DNA of 64,000 nt from Leidyana gryllorum EB-2025a. Its lineage: Eukaryota; Protista; Apicomplexa. Below the pieces are notes generated by a model. That model was not told where the DNA came from and made no database searches. It saw nothing but the letters and a program-made list of their open reading frames with translations. How positions within the stretch are numbered: position 1 is the stretch's first letter; every line of letters begins with the position of its first letter. The position numbers were made by a program, and so were the translations under genes. The DNA is taken from the NCBI GenBank assembly GCA_048772705.1, contig JBLWGC010000043.1:434001-498000 (forward strand), in the 5' to 3' direction. Positions 8,065-35,012 of the stretch are shown in pieces.

Positions 8065-9957
8065 TCACGTGGGAATGATCACAGATGACACATAGGTGCA
8101 CGCACAAACGAGAGCAGTAAGAGCGAGGGAGTGTTTCAGGGTTCCTTTCATAATATCTGCTTCCTTCCCGATCATTCCAACAGCGGCGGCGGCAATGGCA
8201 ATTGACTGAGGGCTGACGGCTTTGCCCATGGTGCCTCCTGCAGTGTTGGCGGCGACCAGAAGAGTAGGACTAACGCCGATTTGAGTTGCTGTGACGGCTT
8301 GCAGCCTGGCGAATAGTACATTATTGTTGACGACGCTGCCAGTGATGAAGACTCCCAGCCAGCCCACTACGGGGCAGAAGAGGGGGAAGACGGCTCCTGC
8401 GCCGCTGACAGCCAAACCCATGGTGGCAGAAGCGCCACAAAAGTTTGCCACATACGCTACGGCCATGACCAAGCAGATCATAGCGCAAGCTCGCCACAAT
8501 TCCTTGCAAGTTCTGACCAATTCCTCGAGGGATTGCTTGAATGTGATCCTTCGAGTGGTGATGATGGTCAAGAAAATGCTGATGAAGAGTGCTGTGCCGG
8601 AAGCGCTGATGAAGTTGATGGGCCATACTGCAGGAGTGGCCACGTTGGGTTTGATGGGAGGTGTCTGAATAACATCGTTGTGGAGGTACGGCATCTCGAC
8701 TTTCACGGTGGTCGCCTCCAGCAGACCACCGGCCGCGAACAAGCTCTTGAAAGGTGGCAAAGACCATATCAGGATCACAACAGTCAACAACAAGAAGGGA
8801 GACCAAGCCTTCACGATCTCCCAAACACTCAAGTCGGCGAGATTGACTTGGGCTTTAGCGTCGCTCTTGGGCGAGGTTCCTTGTTGTTCCTTCGCCATGG
8901 CCGTGGGAGGACATATTCTGGTATCCTCGACGGTGGCACTCAAGACGGTCATCTCGACCTCCTTGGTTGGAGAAGGAGCATCCTTGAGACCTGAGGGCTG
9001 AGCACTCAGGGCTTCTTTGGTGCCCTTCTGGGAAGCGCTGTGTACGACGGTGACGGAGGGCTCGCCACCTGAGTGACCGAGTTCCAAATCGTCGTCGCCA
9101 TCCTCCCCTCCTTCCCGGTAGATGAAAGATGGAGACCAGAAACGAGTCAGTCCAATCAGACACAGCATACTCACCAACGCAGCTGCAATGTTGGTGAGCT
9201 CCGGGCCCATAGTCCAGAGAGTTGCTGACTGAACCAAACTGTTGACCAGACCCAGAAGGATCCAGGCGGGCGCAGTCTGTTTGAGTCCCCGCATGCCATC
9301 TGTGATGGCCACCATGATGGCGGGGATGAAGATGACTGAAATCTGTGCTGTGGGGATCATTGCACGGGACATGGCAATGGTTTCGAGATCTGCTTGCTGG
9401 GCACCAACCAGTATGGGGATACCGATGGCACCATACGAGCCCACGGCTGCGTTGGCTACTAGTGACAGACAGGTCGCTTTGAGGGGCTTGAAGCCCAACT
9501 CTGTGAGCATAGCCGCGCAGATGGCTATGGGAGTCCCGAAGGCGCAGGCACCTTCGAGGAAACCGCCGAAGCAGAAGGCAATGAGCAACACTTGGATGCG
9601 AGAATCGTCTGACACGGATGCGACACTAGCCCGGATGATGGAGAATTTGCCCGAACGGATGGCAATCTTGTAGAGCCACACGGCGGCGATGATGATGTAG
9701 CAGATGGGCCAAACCCCGGACGCTATGCCATAGGCGGCTGCCATTCCACTCATGAGCAGTGGCATATTGAAGACAAATTGAGCCACAGCAAACTGGAAGG
9801 TTAGTGTGATTAGAGCAGCGTGAAGGCCCTTCATTTTGAGTACTGTGAGCGCCACCAGGAAGAAGGCGATGGGGAGCGCTGCCAGAGCCGCTGAAACATA
9901 CCGGTTGACGACAGGATCATATTCCTGGTTCCACGACGATTCATAAAGGAGAGCCAT
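8065..9957 (-). CDS. lctP: L-lactate permease, LctP/LldP family (intronless)
   Basis: 630 aa. WNQEYDP...AALPIAFF, DSRIQVLLIAFCFGGFLEGACAFGTPIA, GWLGVFITGS and ANTAGGTMGKAVSPQSIAIA are typical LctP motifs. Confidence 0.93.
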   Translation of the reverse strand: MALLYESSWNQEYDPVVNRYVSAALAALPIAFFLVALTVLKMKGLHAALITLTFQFAVAQFVFNMPLLMSGMAAAYGIASGVWPICYIIIAAVWLYKIAIRSGKFSIIRASVASVSDDSRIQVLLIAFCFGGFLEGACAFGTPIAICAAMLTELGFKPLKATCLSLVANAAVGSYGAIGIPILVGAQQADLETIAMSRAMIPTAQISVIFIPAIMVAITDGMRGLKQTAPAWILLGLVNSLVQSATLWTMGPELTNIAAALVSMLCLIGLTRFWSPSFIYREGGEDGDDDLELGHSGGEPSVTVVHSASQKGTKEALSAQPSGLKDAPSPTKEVEMTVLSATVEDTRICPPTAMAKEQQGTSPKSDAKAQVNLADLSVWEIVKAWSPFLLLTVVILIWSLPPFKSLFAAGGLLEATTVKVEMPYLHNDVIQTPPIKPNVATPAVWPINFISASGTALFISIFLTIITTRRITFKQSLEELVRTCKELWRACAMICLVMAVAYVANFCGASATMGLAVSGAGAVFPLFCPVVGWLGVFITGSVVNNNVLFARLQAVTATQIGVSPTLLVAANTAGGTMGKAVSPQSIAIAAAAVGMIGKEADIMKGTLKHSLALTALVCACTYVSSVIIPT

Positions 9958-9991: not shown

Positions 9992-12001
9992 ATGCTATGG
10001 GTTTTGCTGCTATTAAATCTTGTCTTGGGCACTCGGGTCTACGTGTTGGTGGACTGCGACCTGACGCTGAGTAGTAATTGTAGGACCGCATGCCGCGCGT
10101 CGTGTGCCGAACGAGTCCTTGAGTACCCGGACGGAGTTCAATGTATTGAAGACATCCCGCAGGACTGTGCCATCCAAGCATGGTTCTGGACCATTTCCCC
10201 TTTGGACTCTGTGATAGAACCGAATGCTCTAGTGACCAACTACAACTTCTTCGTCCCCGCATTCCCTCCCGTCAATTTCCGCTCAGCAATCGATGTAACC
10301 CGGTTTGGGATCACGGCCGTCTACCCGGGATCATGTAAGGTGACGAAGGCTGAATACATTTCAAGTTGGCGGAGAGCCTCCGAGGAATACCCGACGTATC
10401 CCGTGATCGATCTCCTACCGTATTGGGGCGATCTGATCCCGGACACGTTGCCTGACTATTTCTTGCACTTTGAGGCATTCGCCGAGCGCTTCCCCATGGT
10501 CAATGATAGCGACGAGGATTGGGCTCAGCGAATCCTCTTGACGATCATCTTTGAGATGAGAATCACCATTGATCCTTCGCTTCAATGTGGAGACGATCCT
10601 CAAGACGAGCCTGTAAGCACTACAGAAATCGCAGAGTCGAGCTCGAGCGTTCACGGTGATGCCTCGACTACCGTACTGGATATTGCTCTTGTTGGATCGT
10701 CAACCCGTTTTCACGAAAGGACGGAGAGGACGGAAGCCCCGATACTCCCACCACCCCGACCACTGGGTCCAGCTGACACAGCCCGCCCACCGAAGCGCAC
10801 TAGAACGACAACCACAACAACGACGACAACAACCACAACAACAACGACTCCCTTCCCATATCATGGAGCCGTAACTGCAACACGCTCACGGGAGGTCCCA
10901 TATCCGACTGGTTACGAACGATTATTGTTCTCTCACCTCTTAAATGGCGATGACAACTTGCCGTCAGGGGCTGTGTCCGGCGAGGGTTGGGAAAAAATAC
11001 GAAGGTTAGGCATTGACAATGACGACAACAAGGAGACACTCTCTGGTTCCAACTTTGATGATCCTTTCATCGGTCCAGAGGCCCCAACCCCAACGTTTAT
11101 CTCGTCACTTCATCTCGTGAGACTGACGGGACTGGCGGCTGAGACTGAGGTGGTCGCACCGCAAGCGGATTGGGTGTACCTGGAGGAGGATCAAACTTTA
11201 TCCATCAGCTCTGAGGCTCGCTTGAGAATCAATTGCGATAAAACTCAGAGCTGTTGCCAGCAAATGTGCCGAGCCCACTGCACTCCCGACAGCGATCCCA
11301 GTTGTCTTCGGTTCCTGCCTATGGATTGTGTGGTTGAAGTGGTGTTGAGTCATGAGACTGCTTTGAGTGCTGATGACTGGTGTAAAGGTGTGTCTCACAT
11401 TGCCGTCGACGGTTCCAAGATCGGGGCCCGAGCACTCCAGGTGCAGTCGGTGACCGATGCGACAGAGTTTCGGCCTGTGGCCCTCTCTGTCGACTTTTTC
11501 AGAGTTTATTACGATGGCACCGGAGTGGCGTTTGATGAGTGTGCTGCCCTTCCAGTGGTCGAAATGGGAATGCAAAAGATGAATGAAAATGGATTGAACT
11601 GTTCTCATCAGCAGCGAGCACCTCATGATCTCTCGACATCACACTATCAAGCTTCTGCCCGTCGCGCATACATTGATTACGGCCCTCTGCTCCATTCACA
11701 TCATGTCGACCAACTCCCCCGGTCCGGCTGGGCACTCCATTTCGCTCCCTGGGTACCGAGATGGTGCTCAATGGACGTACAGCCCACTTATGTGACGTCA
11801 TCGGTGATCCTGAAATATGCCACTGCACCGGGCCCAGACCGTTGGGCCGAGTGCGAAGACTTTGCTAATGTCGATTCTACTGTCCACGTCGTGGGACCCG
11901 GTTCCGACAACGATGGAGATGTATCGTCTGTCGGAGCCACGCTGGTCGGGAACTCTCTGGCCGCGCTCATATTTTCATCCTCTATCATATTCTTGATGTG
12001 A
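9992..12001 (+). CDS. Secreted, probably GPI-anchored surface protein with Thr-rich mucin linker and two related Cys-rich domains
   Basis: Signal peptide MLWVLLLLNLVLG, long poly-Thr run, and hydrophobic C-terminus after a small-residue stretch (SSVGA...LAALIFSSSIIFLM). Confidence 0.8.
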   Translation: MLWVLLLLNLVLGTRVYVLVDCDLTLSSNCRTACRASCAERVLEYPDGVQCIEDIPQDCAIQAWFWTISPLDSVIEPNALVTNYNFFVPAFPPVNFRSAIDVTRFGITAVYPGSCKVTKAEYISSWRRASEEYPTYPVIDLLPYWGDLIPDTLPDYFLHFEAFAERFPMVNDSDEDWAQRILLTIIFEMRITIDPSLQCGDDPQDEPVSTTEIAESSSSVHGDASTTVLDIALVGSSTRFHERTERTEAPILPPPRPLGPADTARPPKRTRTTTTTTTTTTTTTTTPFPYHGAVTATRSREVPYPTGYERLLFSHLLNGDDNLPSGAVSGEGWEKIRRLGIDNDDNKETLSGSNFDDPFIGPEAPTPTFISSLHLVRLTGLAAETEVVAPQADWVYLEEDQTLSISSEARLRINCDKTQSCCQQMCRAHCTPDSDPSCLRFLPMDCVVEVVLSHETALSADDWCKGVSHIAVDGSKIGARALQVQSVTDATEFRPVALSVDFFRVYYDGTGVAFDECAALPVVEMGMQKMNENGLNCSHQQRAPHDLSTSHYQASARRAYIDYGPLLHSHHVDQLPRSGWALHFAPWVPRWCSMDVQPTYVTSSVILKYATAPGPDRWAECEDFANVDSTVHVVGPGSDNDGDVSSVGATLVGNSLAALIFSSSIIFLM

Positions 12002-16793: not shown

Positions 16794-19700
16794 CTAGAGG
16801 AAGAGGTGCGTCTCCTGCAAACTGTTCAGGCCACTTCCCCCCTTAGCCAACCCCTACAACACAAAAAAGGTTTTCGTCCTGGAGGAGGAAGAGAAACACT
16901 CACCTCATAGACTGTCAGCGCTCGCTCGGCACCCAGCTCAGCAAGCCGCAAGACATGGGGAACTTTACTAGCATTGAACTGATTATAGTATAGAAATGTC
17001 AAGCGGAGACTCAGATCTTGAATCTCTTTCAAGCTTAGATGAGTGTTATCTGCGATAAAGGGGGGGGGCCGACAAGATTAATGTCTCTCTCGCTCTCACA
17101 CACTCACTGTGTAATATACTGTAATGCACCGGGAGGCTGAAACCTGTAACTCCCGTGGAGGGAACAATATAGTATTCTTCCCGAGCCCCTCCTGTGGGGC
17201 TGAGCCCTTGGAAAGGACCATCAACAATAGTACAGGCTGGAACGGCGTCCCCGAATCGAGACCCGCCCCTTCTTTCCCCAGATCGTCCTTGTGTCTTGTC
17301 CAAGAGCTCTTTCTTGAAGAACGCCAGGTGGGCGTTATGGGACTTGTTCACCATCACATAGCATATGCCAGGCAGCTATACCAGTCCATTCTTTCCACCA
17401 AACCCCCATCTCCCCACTTACCTTTGGCAGAATTGAATTCCTGCCGTCCGGACCGGTGCATTGGATAGGCGACTTGCCAATATCGGGTTCCTCGCCATCC
17501 GCGAAACGCAGACGGAGCAACACGTGTTTGGAGGCCCCGTCGGCGCCCCCTCCCCACTCAGCTTTCACTTCCTGCCGGAAGGGCAGTCCACTTTCGACCA
17601 ACCGCCCCTCCACGATGTAAGTGCCTTTTTCTTTCCACAGAGGATTAGCGATAAGCAGTTCGCGAGAGTGACTATTCCACCGTTGGAAGCCCATCAGATC
17701 TTCATACGCCTTCAGTATCTGTTGTTGCTCGAGCTCGGCACAGTCCGTCATCAAGCCATCCGACGTCCCTTTGCGGAAGATAACCAGTGTCTCAATCTTA
17801 CGCATGTGTTTGAAACGCAGATTGTGCAGCAATGGCCGCAGGTGGTCCCGGATGTCGCCGAGTATTCCACCCCTACTGATACTCTCCGTTTCCCCAAAAT
17901 CTTGAACAACGCCCAAACAGTCGTTCCCGGTGGTCAGCGTAATGCCGTATCCACCGTGGCCACTCTGACAGGAATCATCCGAGACTACACGGAAGGCCGG
18001 TTTATAAGACGACAACCCCATCACTGTTACATTCTGATGACTGCCCAACGGGTCTTTCACAGCCCAGGGAACTGCCAGCTCAAATTTGGATCGAGCGCTG
18101 CCATCTGGGACAAGTTTGGCCGCCATGGAGGCCAATATCCGGAAGATTGCTTTGTCTCCCTGTCTCTCCAGGACGTCAAAGGTGATCACTTGCGAAGGCA
18201 TCTCGAGCTGATAAGCCATTTTCTTGATGGCTGTGTAATCAGATTCGTCTTTTCTGGGTATCAGAGCAAACAGAACGATCGGTTTGGTGGCAGGATTCTT
18301 CCGAATGCGCCGAGCGATAGCTTCTTGCCGTTCCTCCAAGTGGCTCGCGCGCCCATCCCAGTCCACCACTGGGACTCTCGATGGATCTGAGGATACCTCA
18401 AAGTCCCACTGCCATTTCCGGCAGGCTTGAGACATCTCACGAAGGAACAAATCGATAATTCTGTCATCGATCCGCCCACGCGGGTCGCTCTTGACGAGAA
18501 TAATATACCGATCGCCGATTCGTGGACAGCGGTAATGACTCGAACTGCGGCTGAAGGCTTGTTGGAAGCTTCCATTGTCGTCCAAATTCATAGTGCTGCG
18601 CTCGGACTCTCCCGAAACCACTTGAACGGCATTGCGTTGGACACGGCCGTCGAGCTCTTTGAGCTCTTGTCCAACTTCGATCCCGAAAGATCGGTATGCC
18701 TCTTGGATTTCAGGCGCTCCGAGGCTTCCGACAAACTTGACAATCTCGCCCAGAGCTTCGCGCTCTTTCCGTTGACTCATTCTCGTGATCTCCTCTTTGA
18801 CGTCTTTGGGGAGCTCTCGCGGGTCCACACAGCATACTGAGAGGAGCGAGGCCGGGATGTGGACAGTACGACCCACTTTGATCAGCTGTTTACGCCGACC
18901 CACCAGAACACAGCCGACCATCGGCTGGTCCTTCAAGTTGTCGTCTCTGAGTGCGGGGCAGTCCTTGGCATATCGCTCTCGAAGGTATTCAATGTGAGAC
19001 TTTTCTTTGTCGACATAGGTACCATCCGGTTGTTTCTCGCGATAAACGAAACAGTCCGTTGGCTTCATGTCGTACGAGAGATCCATGACCTGAAAGCGGC
19101 ATCGAAGTGGGAGGAGACGCCGTCAAAACTGGAACACCCACCCTGTACATATTACCAGGGGCATATTTGGTGACCACAAATAGACGACGACGTCTCAAAG
19201 CGGCCACCAGATCCTCGGGGTTTTGATGTTTCTGTTTCAAGTCGTGAATTTCTTCGTCCATTGTTCCTGATAACGGGTGGAGAAAGCGGGTGATGGATGA
19301 ATGAGCGGCGTCTCGGTCTCACTATTCAACATCAATGTATATCGGGGTGAGAATGTCCAATAGAGGCCATCCTCACACGCCGTTAACGCTTTGGCAAATC
19401 CCGGAGCCAACGCGCCATATCGAGATCGTGGTAAGGGACGGAAGGTTCGGGGGTCTGTGTTCACGATACGCATACTCGCGTTCCCAATGAGTGTGAATTT
19501 GCCCCTCTCCAACGCCTGAAGGAGCTCAAATGACTGTGGAGACATCGGTTGGACACTCACCGCATCGGACAGCAGAGAGAGGAACTGAAGCCATACATCC
19601 GGGTGATGTTTAAATGTACGTAGACCAGAGGTGTGGGACTCTTTGAACGTCAGTGTCCATACTTCTTCGTTCCCGTCTTTCGTTTTCAGTTGAATTGTAG

Positions 19701-20263
19701 AGCCATCAAGTGATTCCAGGAGGTCTTTGGCAGCGGTATTGGGGTCCATCACGTACAAAGTCGCTCCCTCAGCACAACGCATTTGAAGTACCTTGGAGAA
19801 CTCTATCGAGTTCCACGGCCCCGTGCGGTGGCACAGAATCTTCTGCTTGAAGTTCTGATCCGTTATGCCCAACTGCCCGACGAGAATTTCCGATAGAGAG
19901 GCATTTGAGGCTCACAGGTCGTGGCCCATCGAAGGCAATATTGAAGACTCGAAGGCATCCAAAGGTACCGGGGATAGTGCGCAGAGAGAGAGCATTGGCA
20001 ACCAAGCGGATCTGAAGGTGGAAAGAGTGGTTGATGCTTGGCACCGGGACGGGACGACTTACGAGCTCAGGCTGATGGTGATGGCGTTTAGCCTCACGCG
20101 GCGGCCGGTAGTCAGGTTCAGCATACTGGCGTTTGGGGCGTTGTGGCATTCGATCTCCGCCTCCTCTCGCCGGGTGTTCTCGGCGAGGTGGGCTGGAACG
20201 AGGGGGGGCCCGTTGACGGTGGCCACCTCCACCGAGAGAGGCTCTGCCAAAGCGTCCTGACAT
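16794..20263 (-). CDS. AGO: Argonaute/Piwi-family protein, divergent and predicted slicer-inactive
   Basis: R/G-rich N-terminus; PAZ (SHIEYLRERY...DQPMV...IPASLL); MID (DYTAIKK, PSQVI, MAAKL); PIWI (LVIFRKGTSDG, YVMVNKSH, PVHYSIL, LTFLYYN..KVP); C-terminal LQETHLFL-stop at 16794. About 8 exons. Confidence 0.9.
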
Positions 20264-23996: not shown

Positions 23997-25175
23997 CTAG
24001 GCGGTCCACTCTCCCCCGAGAGCGATGCACTGATCTTGGGTCAAAGTACACAGACTTCCACCGTAGGCCAGGAGGTTCGCTACACTCGAGGGGGCGTAAC
24101 TTCGTGCAGCGAGCAGATCTCCTTGTGATATTGTGCAACAACCGACCGTTGCTGTAGGATCGAGGCTTCGGTCGGGCATGACAATGAGTGCGCGTACTGA
24201 AACAAGTTCAGCTCCGTACAGAAAAGGCTCGTGTATGTGGTCGTTGAGTCCCAGCCCGCATCCTTCGGTAAATTCGACTGTCACTTTGAACAGTACTCCC
24301 GGTTCGAGAACCCCGACTTCCTTCCAGAGCGAACTGAGATCTGGCGCTGGCGAAACGTAGGGAGGAGCAAAAAACATGCCGACTTGTGGCACATTCGAAT
24401 AGTCAAAAGTCACAGGTAGACGATCTTGGGGTGCTTGACACAGATCAATGTAGTCTCTACGGTGCTGCCGAGGCACCACGGCAGCCTGAGCCGCTCCAAA
24501 GCTATTGCGGTGACTCGACGAGTGTCCAGTAGACCCTCCCAAAACATAACCTATGTGACCGGGCCGTTGTTGCGGCCAACAAATCCTCGAATCCGCATTC
24601 TCAAAGTAAAAAGCCACCGACACCTCGGCGTCCAGAAACGTAAACCAGTCATTCGAACCATCAATCGGCCACATGTTTGCACTGTACCGCACTGGCACCG
24701 ATGTGCTGTAACCGGGAAAGCTGATTTGCCGTTGAGTCGTAGTTCGCCCTTGGCACACCTCAGTACTCGTCACCGTTTGCTCAACCAGGTACACCACGCT
24801 GTCGAGTTTGGCGGGAGGCGCAGCATAGTGCCCTGACAAGCAGCCCGCCAGATGGTCGGGGTCACAGAACATGTTGCCCTGACATACTGTGGACACCGCT
24901 GTCGTGTACATTTCACGACATAGAAGACATGCTGGATCGTTGTTGGTACATAAGTCCAACAGGATCTTCGTGTTTATCCTGAGAGTGTCGAAAGGCTCCT
25001 CGTGATCAGATGGGAAGGTGAAACGGGGCTCCAATGTACGATTGCGTTTGAAGGCCTCAATGGCCTCGCGATGCTCACGCAACACTTGTTTGAGGGTAGG
25101 AGGAGGACTACCTGAGACCACCACCAAAGAGATGTGGATAACCACCAGCAAGAAAGTAAGAACAACCACCACCAT
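23997..25175 (-). CDS. Secreted Cys-rich protein, unknown function (intronless)
   Basis: Hydrophobic signal MVVVVLTFLLVVIHISLVVVSG and many Cys; ATG at 25175. Confidence 0.75.
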   Translation of the reverse strand: MVVVVLTFLLVVIHISLVVVSGSPPPTLKQVLREHREAIEAFKRNRTLEPRFTFPSDHEEPFDTLRINTKILLDLCTNNDPACLLCREMYTTAVSTVCQGNMFCDPDHLAGCLSGHYAAPPAKLDSVVYLVEQTVTSTEVCQGRTTTQRQISFPGYSTSVPVRYSANMWPIDGSNDWFTFLDAEVSVAFYFENADSRICWPQQRPGHIGYVLGGSTGHSSSHRNSFGAAQAAVVPRQHRRDYIDLCQAPQDRLPVTFDYSNVPQVGMFFAPPYVSPAPDLSSLWKEVGVLEPGVLFKVTVEFTEGCGLGLNDHIHEPFLYGAELVSVRALIVMPDRSLDPTATVGCCTISQGDLLAARSYAPSSVANLLAYGGSLCTLTQDQCIALGGEWTA

Positions 25176-25241
25176 TCTACACACTATTAAATATTCCCAG
25201 CTCGTCGGTCGGTCGGTCGGTCTATCTCACAAACCTCGTCG

Positions 25242-33392: not shown

Positions 33393-35012
33393 ATGATGCA
33401 GCGCCTCTTATCTGTTGCGGGAATCGCGGCGAGTCTCTCTGTCGTGAGCGCCCGGAAGATTCGATTCGTTTGGCTATCAGATCTCCACCTTGACGTTGAG
33501 TACAGCTCTGTGGCAGGACAACGGACGTACTGTCGGGGTAATGTAACACAAGAGACTGTCTTGCGAAAATGCTCCTCCTTGGCGGATATGATGAATGTCA
33601 ATCTGTCCGCTTGGGACGGGGCGGCGGAGGACGATGACAGTGAGCCCGAAGTGGTGGAGAACCGCCAAGATGATTTGAGTGTACCGCTTCTGCCCGCCTA
33701 TCACGGACGGTTTGGGTGTGACGCACCCCCGTCGCTTGTCTGGGCGACTCTGCTATCAATTCGGGAACGCTTATCCAGGACGCCTGCCGAGTTTCTGCTC
33801 ATTACCGGAGACTTCGCGGGACACTACTGGAGCGATCACAGGTGTTTGAGGTCCCTGACGTTGGTGGCAGCCACCAATTTGCTAAAGGAAGCCTTCAAAC
33901 CCGGGGCACGGTCGTGCGTTCCGACTACTTTCGGAAACCAGAGTCACGTATTACATGCAGTCTTGAAGGAGTGTGATCTGCCCGCCGAGCCACCCAGAAA
34001 GATGGCTCAACCTGTATTTTGCGTTGGTAACAATGATCTCAAACACGACTACATAGCGGATGAGAACTCTGATTGGAATCGCGAACTGTATAAGTTATGG
34101 AAAGGATGGGTAATCCCACCCGATCAAGAGACGTTTTTCACTCGGGGTCTGTATTATTCTGTACCTCTGCGTAATGTTGTTAGCGAGAACGGTCGCAAAA
34201 CACGAATCATTTGTCTAAACACAATGTGGTGGGCTCGCACCGGCCCCTCATCGACTGAGACCCATGATCCAGCTGGACAGCACGCGTGGCTGGAGGAGCA
34301 GTTGGCTTTGGGTAGAAAACGGAATGACAATGTAATCATCGCTGGACACATACCACCCTCTCACGCACTATACCGTCTGGCAAACGCTGGTGGGGGGTTC
34401 GCAGTGGACCGTCAATGGCATGATTATCACAATAAACGCTATCACCATCTGATCTGGAAGTACAGAGATGTCGTCAAAGGTCAATACTTTGGACACTTTC
34501 ACACTGACGACATCCGCTTCCAAACGCGCCGACACCACAACAGTGGGCGGATAGACCCCAGCGGGGTCGTTCTCGTCGCCCCTGCCATCTGTCCCAACCA
34601 CGGTAGCAATCCTTCCTGGAGATTGGCAGTGGCCGAGACTGAGCCCGAGTGGGTATTGGAAGATTACGAACAGATATATGTTCCATTGTATGGCAACTCG
34701 AGGCAGTTGGCAACGTTCAACCCCTCGCGCCTCCCGCAATTCGAAACGGAGTATCTGTCCAGAGAACGGTTCAAGGGAGCCAAAGATCTAAGTGTTGCAG
34801 AATTATTTGATCACTATTGGAAGACACTCTCAAATGATGGATATCAGCAGTACTGGAACACACAGACGGCGATGGGAGATCTTCCTCCCTCGTTTTTAAT
34901 GAAATGTATCATTCAAGAAGATTGGATAACTGAAAGTGTGCGAAGATGTGTGACCAGATACGTAAACGAAACCGTCGAACGCGGTGAATCACTCGTCTTC
35001 CTGACCCACTAA
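33393..35012 (+). CDS. Secreted calcineurin-like metallophosphoesterase (acid sphingomyelinase/SMPDL3-like)
   Basis: Signal peptide; SDLHLD, GRFGCDAP, TGD, GNND, GHIPP, FGHFHTD. Confidence 0.9.
   Translation: MMQRLLSVAGIAASLSVVSARKIRFVWLSDLHLDVEYSSVAGQRTYCRGNVTQETVLRKCSSLADMMNVNLSAWDGAAEDDDSEPEVVENRQDDLSVPLLPAYHGRFGCDAPPSLVWATLLSIRERLSRTPAEFLLITGDFAGHYWSDHRCLRSLTLVAATNLLKEAFKPGARSCVPTTFGNQSHVLHAVLKECDLPAEPPRKMAQPVFCVGNNDLKHDYIADENSDWNRELYKLWKGWVIPPDQETFFTRGLYYSVPLRNVVSENGRKTRIICLNTMWWARTGPSSTETHDPAGQHAWLEEQLALGRKRNDNVIIAGHIPPSHALYRLANAGGGFAVDRQWHDYHNKRYHHLIWKYRDVVKGQYFGHFHTDDIRFQTRRHHNSGRIDPSGVVLVAPAICPNHGSNPSWRLAVAETEPEWVLEDYEQIYVPLYGNSRQLATFNPSRLPQFETEYLSRERFKGAKDLSVAELFDHYWKTLSNDGYQQYWNTQTAMGDLPPSFLMKCIIQEDWITESVRRCVTRYVNETVERGESLVFLTH

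Follow-up and report, generated by a model that had tools for sequence, protein, structure and literature searches.

A probable PIWI-clade Argonaute with a replaced slicer site and a conserved inserted domain in gregarine apicomplexans

The window, the whole 64,000-nucleotide stretch of Leidyana gryllorum DNA that was analysed, contains an intact gene encoding a full Argonaute fold at 16794-20263 (-). Judged from its sequence, the encoded protein represents an Argonaute branch not previously reported in Apicomplexa, probably of the PIWI clade. The original prediction had treated the loss of slicer activity as the novelty. Slicer loss by itself is ordinary, non-slicing Argonautes being common, Apicomplexa included: the Toxoplasma AGO is without the catalytic triad (PMC2877743), fly Piwi does not slice (PMC7015924), and both D1 and the His are missing from a Selenidium AGO. 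The most distinctive traits of the gregarine protein are its affinity to the PIWI clade and an inserted domain that is conserved; the prediction had listed the dead slicer and the guide-binding residues and had omitted both of these. No description of gregarine Argonautes, or of a dead PIWI with an inserted domain, was found in a search of the openly accessible literature.

The predicted gene model consists of nine exons (Table 1). Every intron is GT..AG and 43-58 nt long, the phases are continuous, and no exon contains a stop. Intron 3 has two in-frame acceptors, of which the distal one matches the spacing in three orthologues and gives a protein of about 1022 aa. Each exon was queried singly in the homology searches, and the full-length fold was predicted on an orthologue. 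By exon-wise alignment, exons 2-8 are collinear with the full-length EukProt protein P0002, and the complete N-PAZ-MID-PIWI architecture first proposed is borne out, as N-L1-PAZ-L2-MID-PIWI, which places the protein in the eukaryotic Argonaute superfamily. The gene is single-copy in the host genome, with GC/GC3 of 0.54/0.60 compared to 0.52-0.55/0.60-0.64 in neighbouring genes. A UDP-sugar pyrophosphorylase-family gene lies upstream and an UNC-93-like transporter downstream. A basic loop in PAZ (18850-18920 (-), just before the IPA motif) is present in four orthologues and missing from Selenidium and Porospora; it is a possible RNA contact or localisation signal. Elsewhere in the window, an intronless L-lactate permease (8065-9957 (-), Pfam E 1e-155) belongs to a mostly prokaryotic family and is possibly a horizontal transfer, and long open frames at 9992-12001 (+), 23997-25184 (-) and 33393-35012 (+) have no Pfam match.

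Table 1. Features of the PIWI-side Argonaute gene, in window coordinates.
Feature	Position	Strand	Remarks
Exon 1	20063..20263	-	ATG and Arg/Gly/Pro-rich N-terminal tail, probably disordered, 67 aa; start codon inferred, without homology support
Exon 2	19916..20011	-	N domain begins
Exon 3	19561..19872	-	N domain; 27% identity to P0002, pairwise E 7e-6
Exon 4	19323..19515	-	N/L1; acceptor 19516 preferred, alternative exon start 19533
Exon 5	19142..19266	-	L1, PAZ start
Exon 6	17422..19089	-	556 aa, running from the second half of PAZ through L2 and MID into the first half of PIWI with the inserted domain
MID domain	18106..18546	-	5'-phosphate pocket Tyr 18235, Lys 18223, Gln 18190, Lys 18115; metal-ligand position Ser 18127
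Catalytic position 1	18010..18012	-	Ser for Asp
Glutamate-finger position	17866..17868	-	Gly for Glu
Catalytic position 3	17770..17772	-	Lys for Asp
Inserted all-beta domain	17422..17691	-	90 aa, 8 predicted strands; between helix after D2 and next PIWI strand
Exon 7	17108..17375	-	PIWI continues; 47% identity to P0002
Exon 8	16904..17049	-	PIWI-type YYN motif and last catalytic helix; 52% identity to P0002
Catalytic position 4	16937-16939	-	Glu for His
Exon 9	16794..16853	-	C-terminal tail, ending HLFL-stop

The slicer tetrad reads S-G-K-E instead of the canonical D-E-D-H, so that all four positions are replaced. Alignment to fly Piwi/Siwi/MIWI, profile-profile comparison with four AGOs, and a joint alignment agreed on these positions, and none of them gives the protein a slicer-competent D-E-D-H/D tetrad. 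The three replacements named originally (GLS, RKG and the final Glu) are therefore correct, and the glutamate finger has gone as well. The protein is almost certainly a non-slicer. The guide pocket presents the opposite picture. Its four 5'-phosphate residues, which correspond to Tyr551, Lys555, Gln567 and Lys593 of fly Piwi (PMC7015924), had been recognised together with the hydrophobic C-terminus in the original prediction, and they prove to be invariant in all six members despite identities of 22-36%, which indicates selection on guide binding. The guide-backbone YYN motif (Tyr801/Asn803, backbone-binding, in fly Piwi; PMC7015924) is kept, though the Logan and Porospora members have it as Phe-Asn, and the PAZ tyrosines and the free hydrophobic C-terminus are conserved. 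The fifth pocket residue, the metal ligand, is Gln in PIWIs (fly Piwi Gln589) and Lys in AGOs (Lys566) (PMC7015924); it is Gln in Selenidium, Ser or Ala in the other members, and Lys in none. Binding of guide RNA is very probable.

When 1.84 billion representatives were searched exhaustively with HMMER, seven proteins matched, six of them orthologues and the seventh an ordinary chytrid AGO; the matches point to a gregarine as the source of the genome. The orthologues are P0002 (EukProt, 36%), those of Blabericola migrator, Selenidium pygospionis and Porospora cf. gigantea B, and two from sequencing runs, one of which is a fragment without PIWI. The Selenidium and Blabericola orthologues are, like P0002, EukProt entries, the Selenidium one deriving from a transcript accession. 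Only this search recovered them: word-based searches yielded no new relatives, whether exon 6 or the C-terminal region of the Selenidium protein was the query, and a metagenome scan for orthologues of the gene found none. A phmmer run of exon 6 against PDB gave no match. The EukProt-based alignments of PMC11217426 hold one Selenidium entry only, of AGO type. D1, E and D2 are missing from each of the five orthologues that include a PIWI domain (residues A/S, G/R, K/R/L and E/A/D at the four tetrad positions), and all five carry the insertion. The combination of non-slicer and inserted domain is therefore conserved from the archigregarine Selenidium to the eugregarines, and the archigregarine branches first in the orthologue tree. 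One orthologue, P0004 (L014:85-3486 (+), run SRR18067488), occupies a single uninterrupted frame of 1133 aa, with an opposite-strand gene just downstream.

The insertion occupies one shared site and measures 102-142 aa in the orthologues. AlphaFold2 folds it into eight beta strands with good confidence both in exon 6 of the window gene, where block pLDDT is mostly 83-90, and in P0002. An intron is ruled out by the open frame, the coding-like GC3, the presence in all orthologues and the confident fold. In human AGO2 numbering, the domain takes the place of about 691-698, a loop that lines a tryptophan pocket for GW182 and faces away from the RNA channel. No homologue was found in Pfam, PDB or the host genome, and an Atlas search gave sub-threshold Piwi leads only. 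An Ig-like identity was considered and dropped: the matches were weak and viral, or VNAR and CD86 at E 0.6-1.7, and the orthologue model did not repeat them. With no detectable homologue, the role of the domain can be read from position alone; it may carry or recruit an effector in cis. The effector partner in trans that had been proposed is probably still needed, although part of that function may thus reside in the protein itself.

Every PIWI structure outscores every AGO in PDB profile searches with the gregarine protein. Scores were 117-84 bits for PIWIs against 65-56 for AGOs in one search, 87-54 against 33-24 in another, and 62-45 against 30-23 when the query was restricted to the exon-6 region, which excludes the YYN motif; fly Piwi (PDB 6KR6) was the top match in all three. 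The order holds in all three regions, PAZ, MID and PIWI, and extends to PIWIL1 structures that consist of PAZ only; it was reversed in the control with an AGO paralogue (AGO 131, PIWI 56 bits). The Asgard protein HrAgo1 scores about level with the PIWIs in the same searches, which suggests that some PIWI-like states are ancestral. Structure comparison did not separate PIWI and AGO (Z within 1). The motif PSQ was rejected as a PIWI marker, as the AGO paralogue L006 carries it too. The protein does not group with AGOs and has neither a Lys566 equivalent nor the R-C/A-x-R-S-V-S motif. A 16-row tree, unrooted and without outgroup, used PIWI references picked by a motif common to the gregarine clade, with the motif columns removed. 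The gregarine PIWI-side clade, on a long stem, was supported at 100/99 and the AGO clade closed at 99/97, while the PIWI references by themselves were weakly monophyletic (70/52). A phylogeny against AGO and PIWI sequences, as the original prediction had suggested, thus puts the gregarine clade outside the sampled AGOs; on this unrooted, long-branched tree, nesting among them was rejected at p-AU 0.021 (two such tests share one constrained likelihood and count as one). In this unrooted tree, whose PIWI node is weak, the branch point of the clade lies 0.18 away from the PIWI node, compared with 0.53 for the AGO node. Taken by sequence, the protein is likely PIWI-derived.

The gene had been framed as an Argonaute in a reduced apicomplexan-type genome, a picture that the genome itself does not support. 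The suggested search for Dicer, RdRP, HEN1 and paralogues recovered a Dicer whose two RNase III signatures are intact, an RdRP with a DLDGD motif, and two further Argonautes on contig C121 (L005:2255-5312 (+) and L006:4075-7163 (-)). Both are AGO-clade proteins with long RGG tails that group with the Selenidium AGO at 100/100. Their tetrad is D-D-D-H, the glutamate finger being Asp, and slicing by them is plausible, not certain. The Selenidium pygospionis AGO, P0001, has D1 changed to Ser, the glutamate finger to Thr and His to Lys, an independent loss. The genome also has a single gene with a Tudor domain, alongside at least 150 reverse-transcriptase matches (counted only), most without stops, in long open frames and densely packed. 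They are spread over many contigs, for example C8, C25, C55, C108, C201, C230 and C43:84000-182000, a load unusual for an apicomplexan. No HEN1, GTSF1 or Zucchini/PLD6 was detected in the genome by a search that divergent or intron-split homologues could escape, and a Maelstrom search, which had no positive control, was blank. The matches to the piRNA-factor queries whose sequences were read, all but L037, were COQ3-like, TRM13-like, PGS1-like or two-motif PLDs; CHHC, methyltransferase and PLD matches were rejected as GTSF1, HEN1 and Zucchini on inspecting the sequences. Two phospholipase D genes, L038 (C177) and L039 (C169), read as plant-type two-motif enzymes. As tested by the genes searched, the protein does not appear to belong to an animal piRNA pathway.

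Among known systems, fly Piwi likewise keeps the 5'-phosphate pocket, does not slice and is proposed to be a binding platform; its example shows that a lost slicer activity can help to hold a target stably (PMC7015924). It differs in keeping both aspartates (DVDK), where none of the four residues remains here, and in lacking the inserted domain. The partners of fly Piwi are Zucchini, HEN1, GTSF1 and Maelstrom. The Toxoplasma gondii protein TgAgo ('PIWI-Api') has also lost the catalytic triad and kept the MID residues (PMC2877743, PMC9935688). By its published description it is set apart as a single AGO-clade protein with E/S/E, whereas the gregarine protein lies on the PIWI side, is accompanied by two other Argonautes and contains the inserted domain. 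Ciliate PIWIs (the Tetrahymena Twi family, including Twi12) are alveolate, PIWI-clade and in some cases non-catalytic, and act outside the animal piRNA pathway. A ciliate-code PIWI on a metagenome contig, L026:583-2484 (-), has the non-catalytic tetrad S/Q/Q/D, which at positions 1 and 4 is similar to that of the Selenidium orthologue; unlike the gregarine clade it has no inserted beta domain. Nematode WAGOs are lineage-restricted, divergent and catalytically dead, alongside an RdRP; compared by description, they share divergence, a dead site and the presence of RdRP with the gregarine clade, but are expanded, while the latter is single-copy and ranks with PIWI. Short and long-B prokaryotic Argonautes and Med13 also pair a dead RNase H site with an added or partner domain. 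Such inactive PIWI modules are weaker structural matches, and the gregarine protein differs in its full N-PAZ-MID-PIWI and in an added domain that lies within PIWI and has no recognised enzyme fold.

A kept phosphate pocket, an erased catalytic site and a fixed surface domain fit a protein that loads a guide, binds its target uncut and hands it to a partner. By analogy with fly Piwi, we tentatively favour an RNA-guided, non-slicing binding platform with transposon and repeat silencing as its main job, a reading we hold with somewhat less than even confidence. The protein would load 5'-phosphorylated small RNAs supplied by the genome's own Dicer and RdRP, as Zucchini, HEN1 and GTSF1 were not detected. 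It would then pair with its target and, being unable to cut, stay bound as fly Piwi does, and the inserted domain, on the face where AGO2 docks GW182, would recruit a decay or chromatin effector. Slicing-type AGOs, Dicer, RdRP and a heavy retrotransposon load make repeat silencing the likeliest job; the main targets would be abundant retrotransposon transcripts, with any slicing left to the AGO paralogues. A broader scenario, speculative and rather doubtful, is that gregarines kept an ancestral alveolate PIWI lost elsewhere in Apicomplexa and rebuilt it as a self-contained non-slicing silencer. The grafted beta domain would then be a built-in effector or adaptor in a pathway without Zucchini, HEN1 or GTSF1 that restrains the large retrotransposon load.

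Other roles can be drawn from the same features. One is the control of host-gene mRNAs at particular stages, gamonts or gametocysts for instance, by translation repression or decay through the inserted domain, which would suit a non-slicing protein kept in lineages whose transposon loads may differ. The Tudor-domain gene and the RG-containing tail are in keeping with it, and such a role has been proposed for the slicer-deficient Toxoplasma AGO (PMC2877743). The two AGO paralogues with long RGG tails suit this role better, however, which leaves it unlikely for the PIWI-side protein. PIWI-clade proteins, moreover, mostly target repeats. A housekeeping PIWI would instead bind tRNA or rRNA fragments and activate an exonuclease complex when loaded, without target-specific silencing. 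Twi12 is non-catalytic and activates Xrn2, and single copy, long retention and extreme divergence would fit such a function. Twi12 is also a ciliate PIWI, binds tRNA fragments and is essential (PMC4050365), and L026 shares a replaced tetrad, its sisterhood with the gregarine clade not being rejected (p 0.08). The free tree does not join the two, however. Plasmodium and Cryptosporidium are not known to possess any Argonaute at all, and we regard the housekeeping role as quite unlikely.

Origin rather than role is at issue if the protein is a fast-evolving or deep AGO-side paralogue, a WAGO-like secondary Argonaute loaded with RdRP products, whose PIWI likeness is convergent or ancestral. The long stem, the missing root, the RdRP and the HrAgo1 scores agree with this, and language-model neighbours that include nematode PAZ/Piwi clusters are an unlabelled lead in the same direction. 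The rejected nesting among sampled AGOs, the PIWI-over-AGO order across three regions and a MID without the AGO-type Lys make it improbable. A guide-independent scaffold, with the fold kept for protein interactions only as in the inactive PIWI module of Med13, would account for the complete loss of catalysis, the large insertion and the Ser/Ala at the metal-ligand position of eugregarine members; it is very improbable given the conservation of the four phosphate residues, YYN motif, PAZ tyrosines and hydrophobic C-terminus. A pseudogene, mis-assembly or host contamination is hardly credible: the Pfam score is sub-threshold, but the nine-exon frame is open and in register with an orthologue, the GC/GC3 is like that of the neighbours, and the archigregarine branches first in the orthologue tree.

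Apicomplexa have been described as having no RNA silencing or one AGO-clade protein, without Piwi and without transposons; a Piwi protein is reported to be absent from Toxoplasma, and transposons to have been purged from apicomplexans (PMC2877743, PMC9935688). In contrast, this genome has a PIWI-side protein beside its two AGOs, as well as Dicer, RdRP and its many RT matches. Selenidium also has both Argonaute lineages, which suggests that early apicomplexans carried both the AGO and the PIWI branches. Whether PIWI loss tracks transposon loss thereby becomes testable. Additionally, a eukaryotic Argonaute with none of the four catalytic residues and a conserved PIWI insertion provides a natural case of dead slicer-effector coupling.
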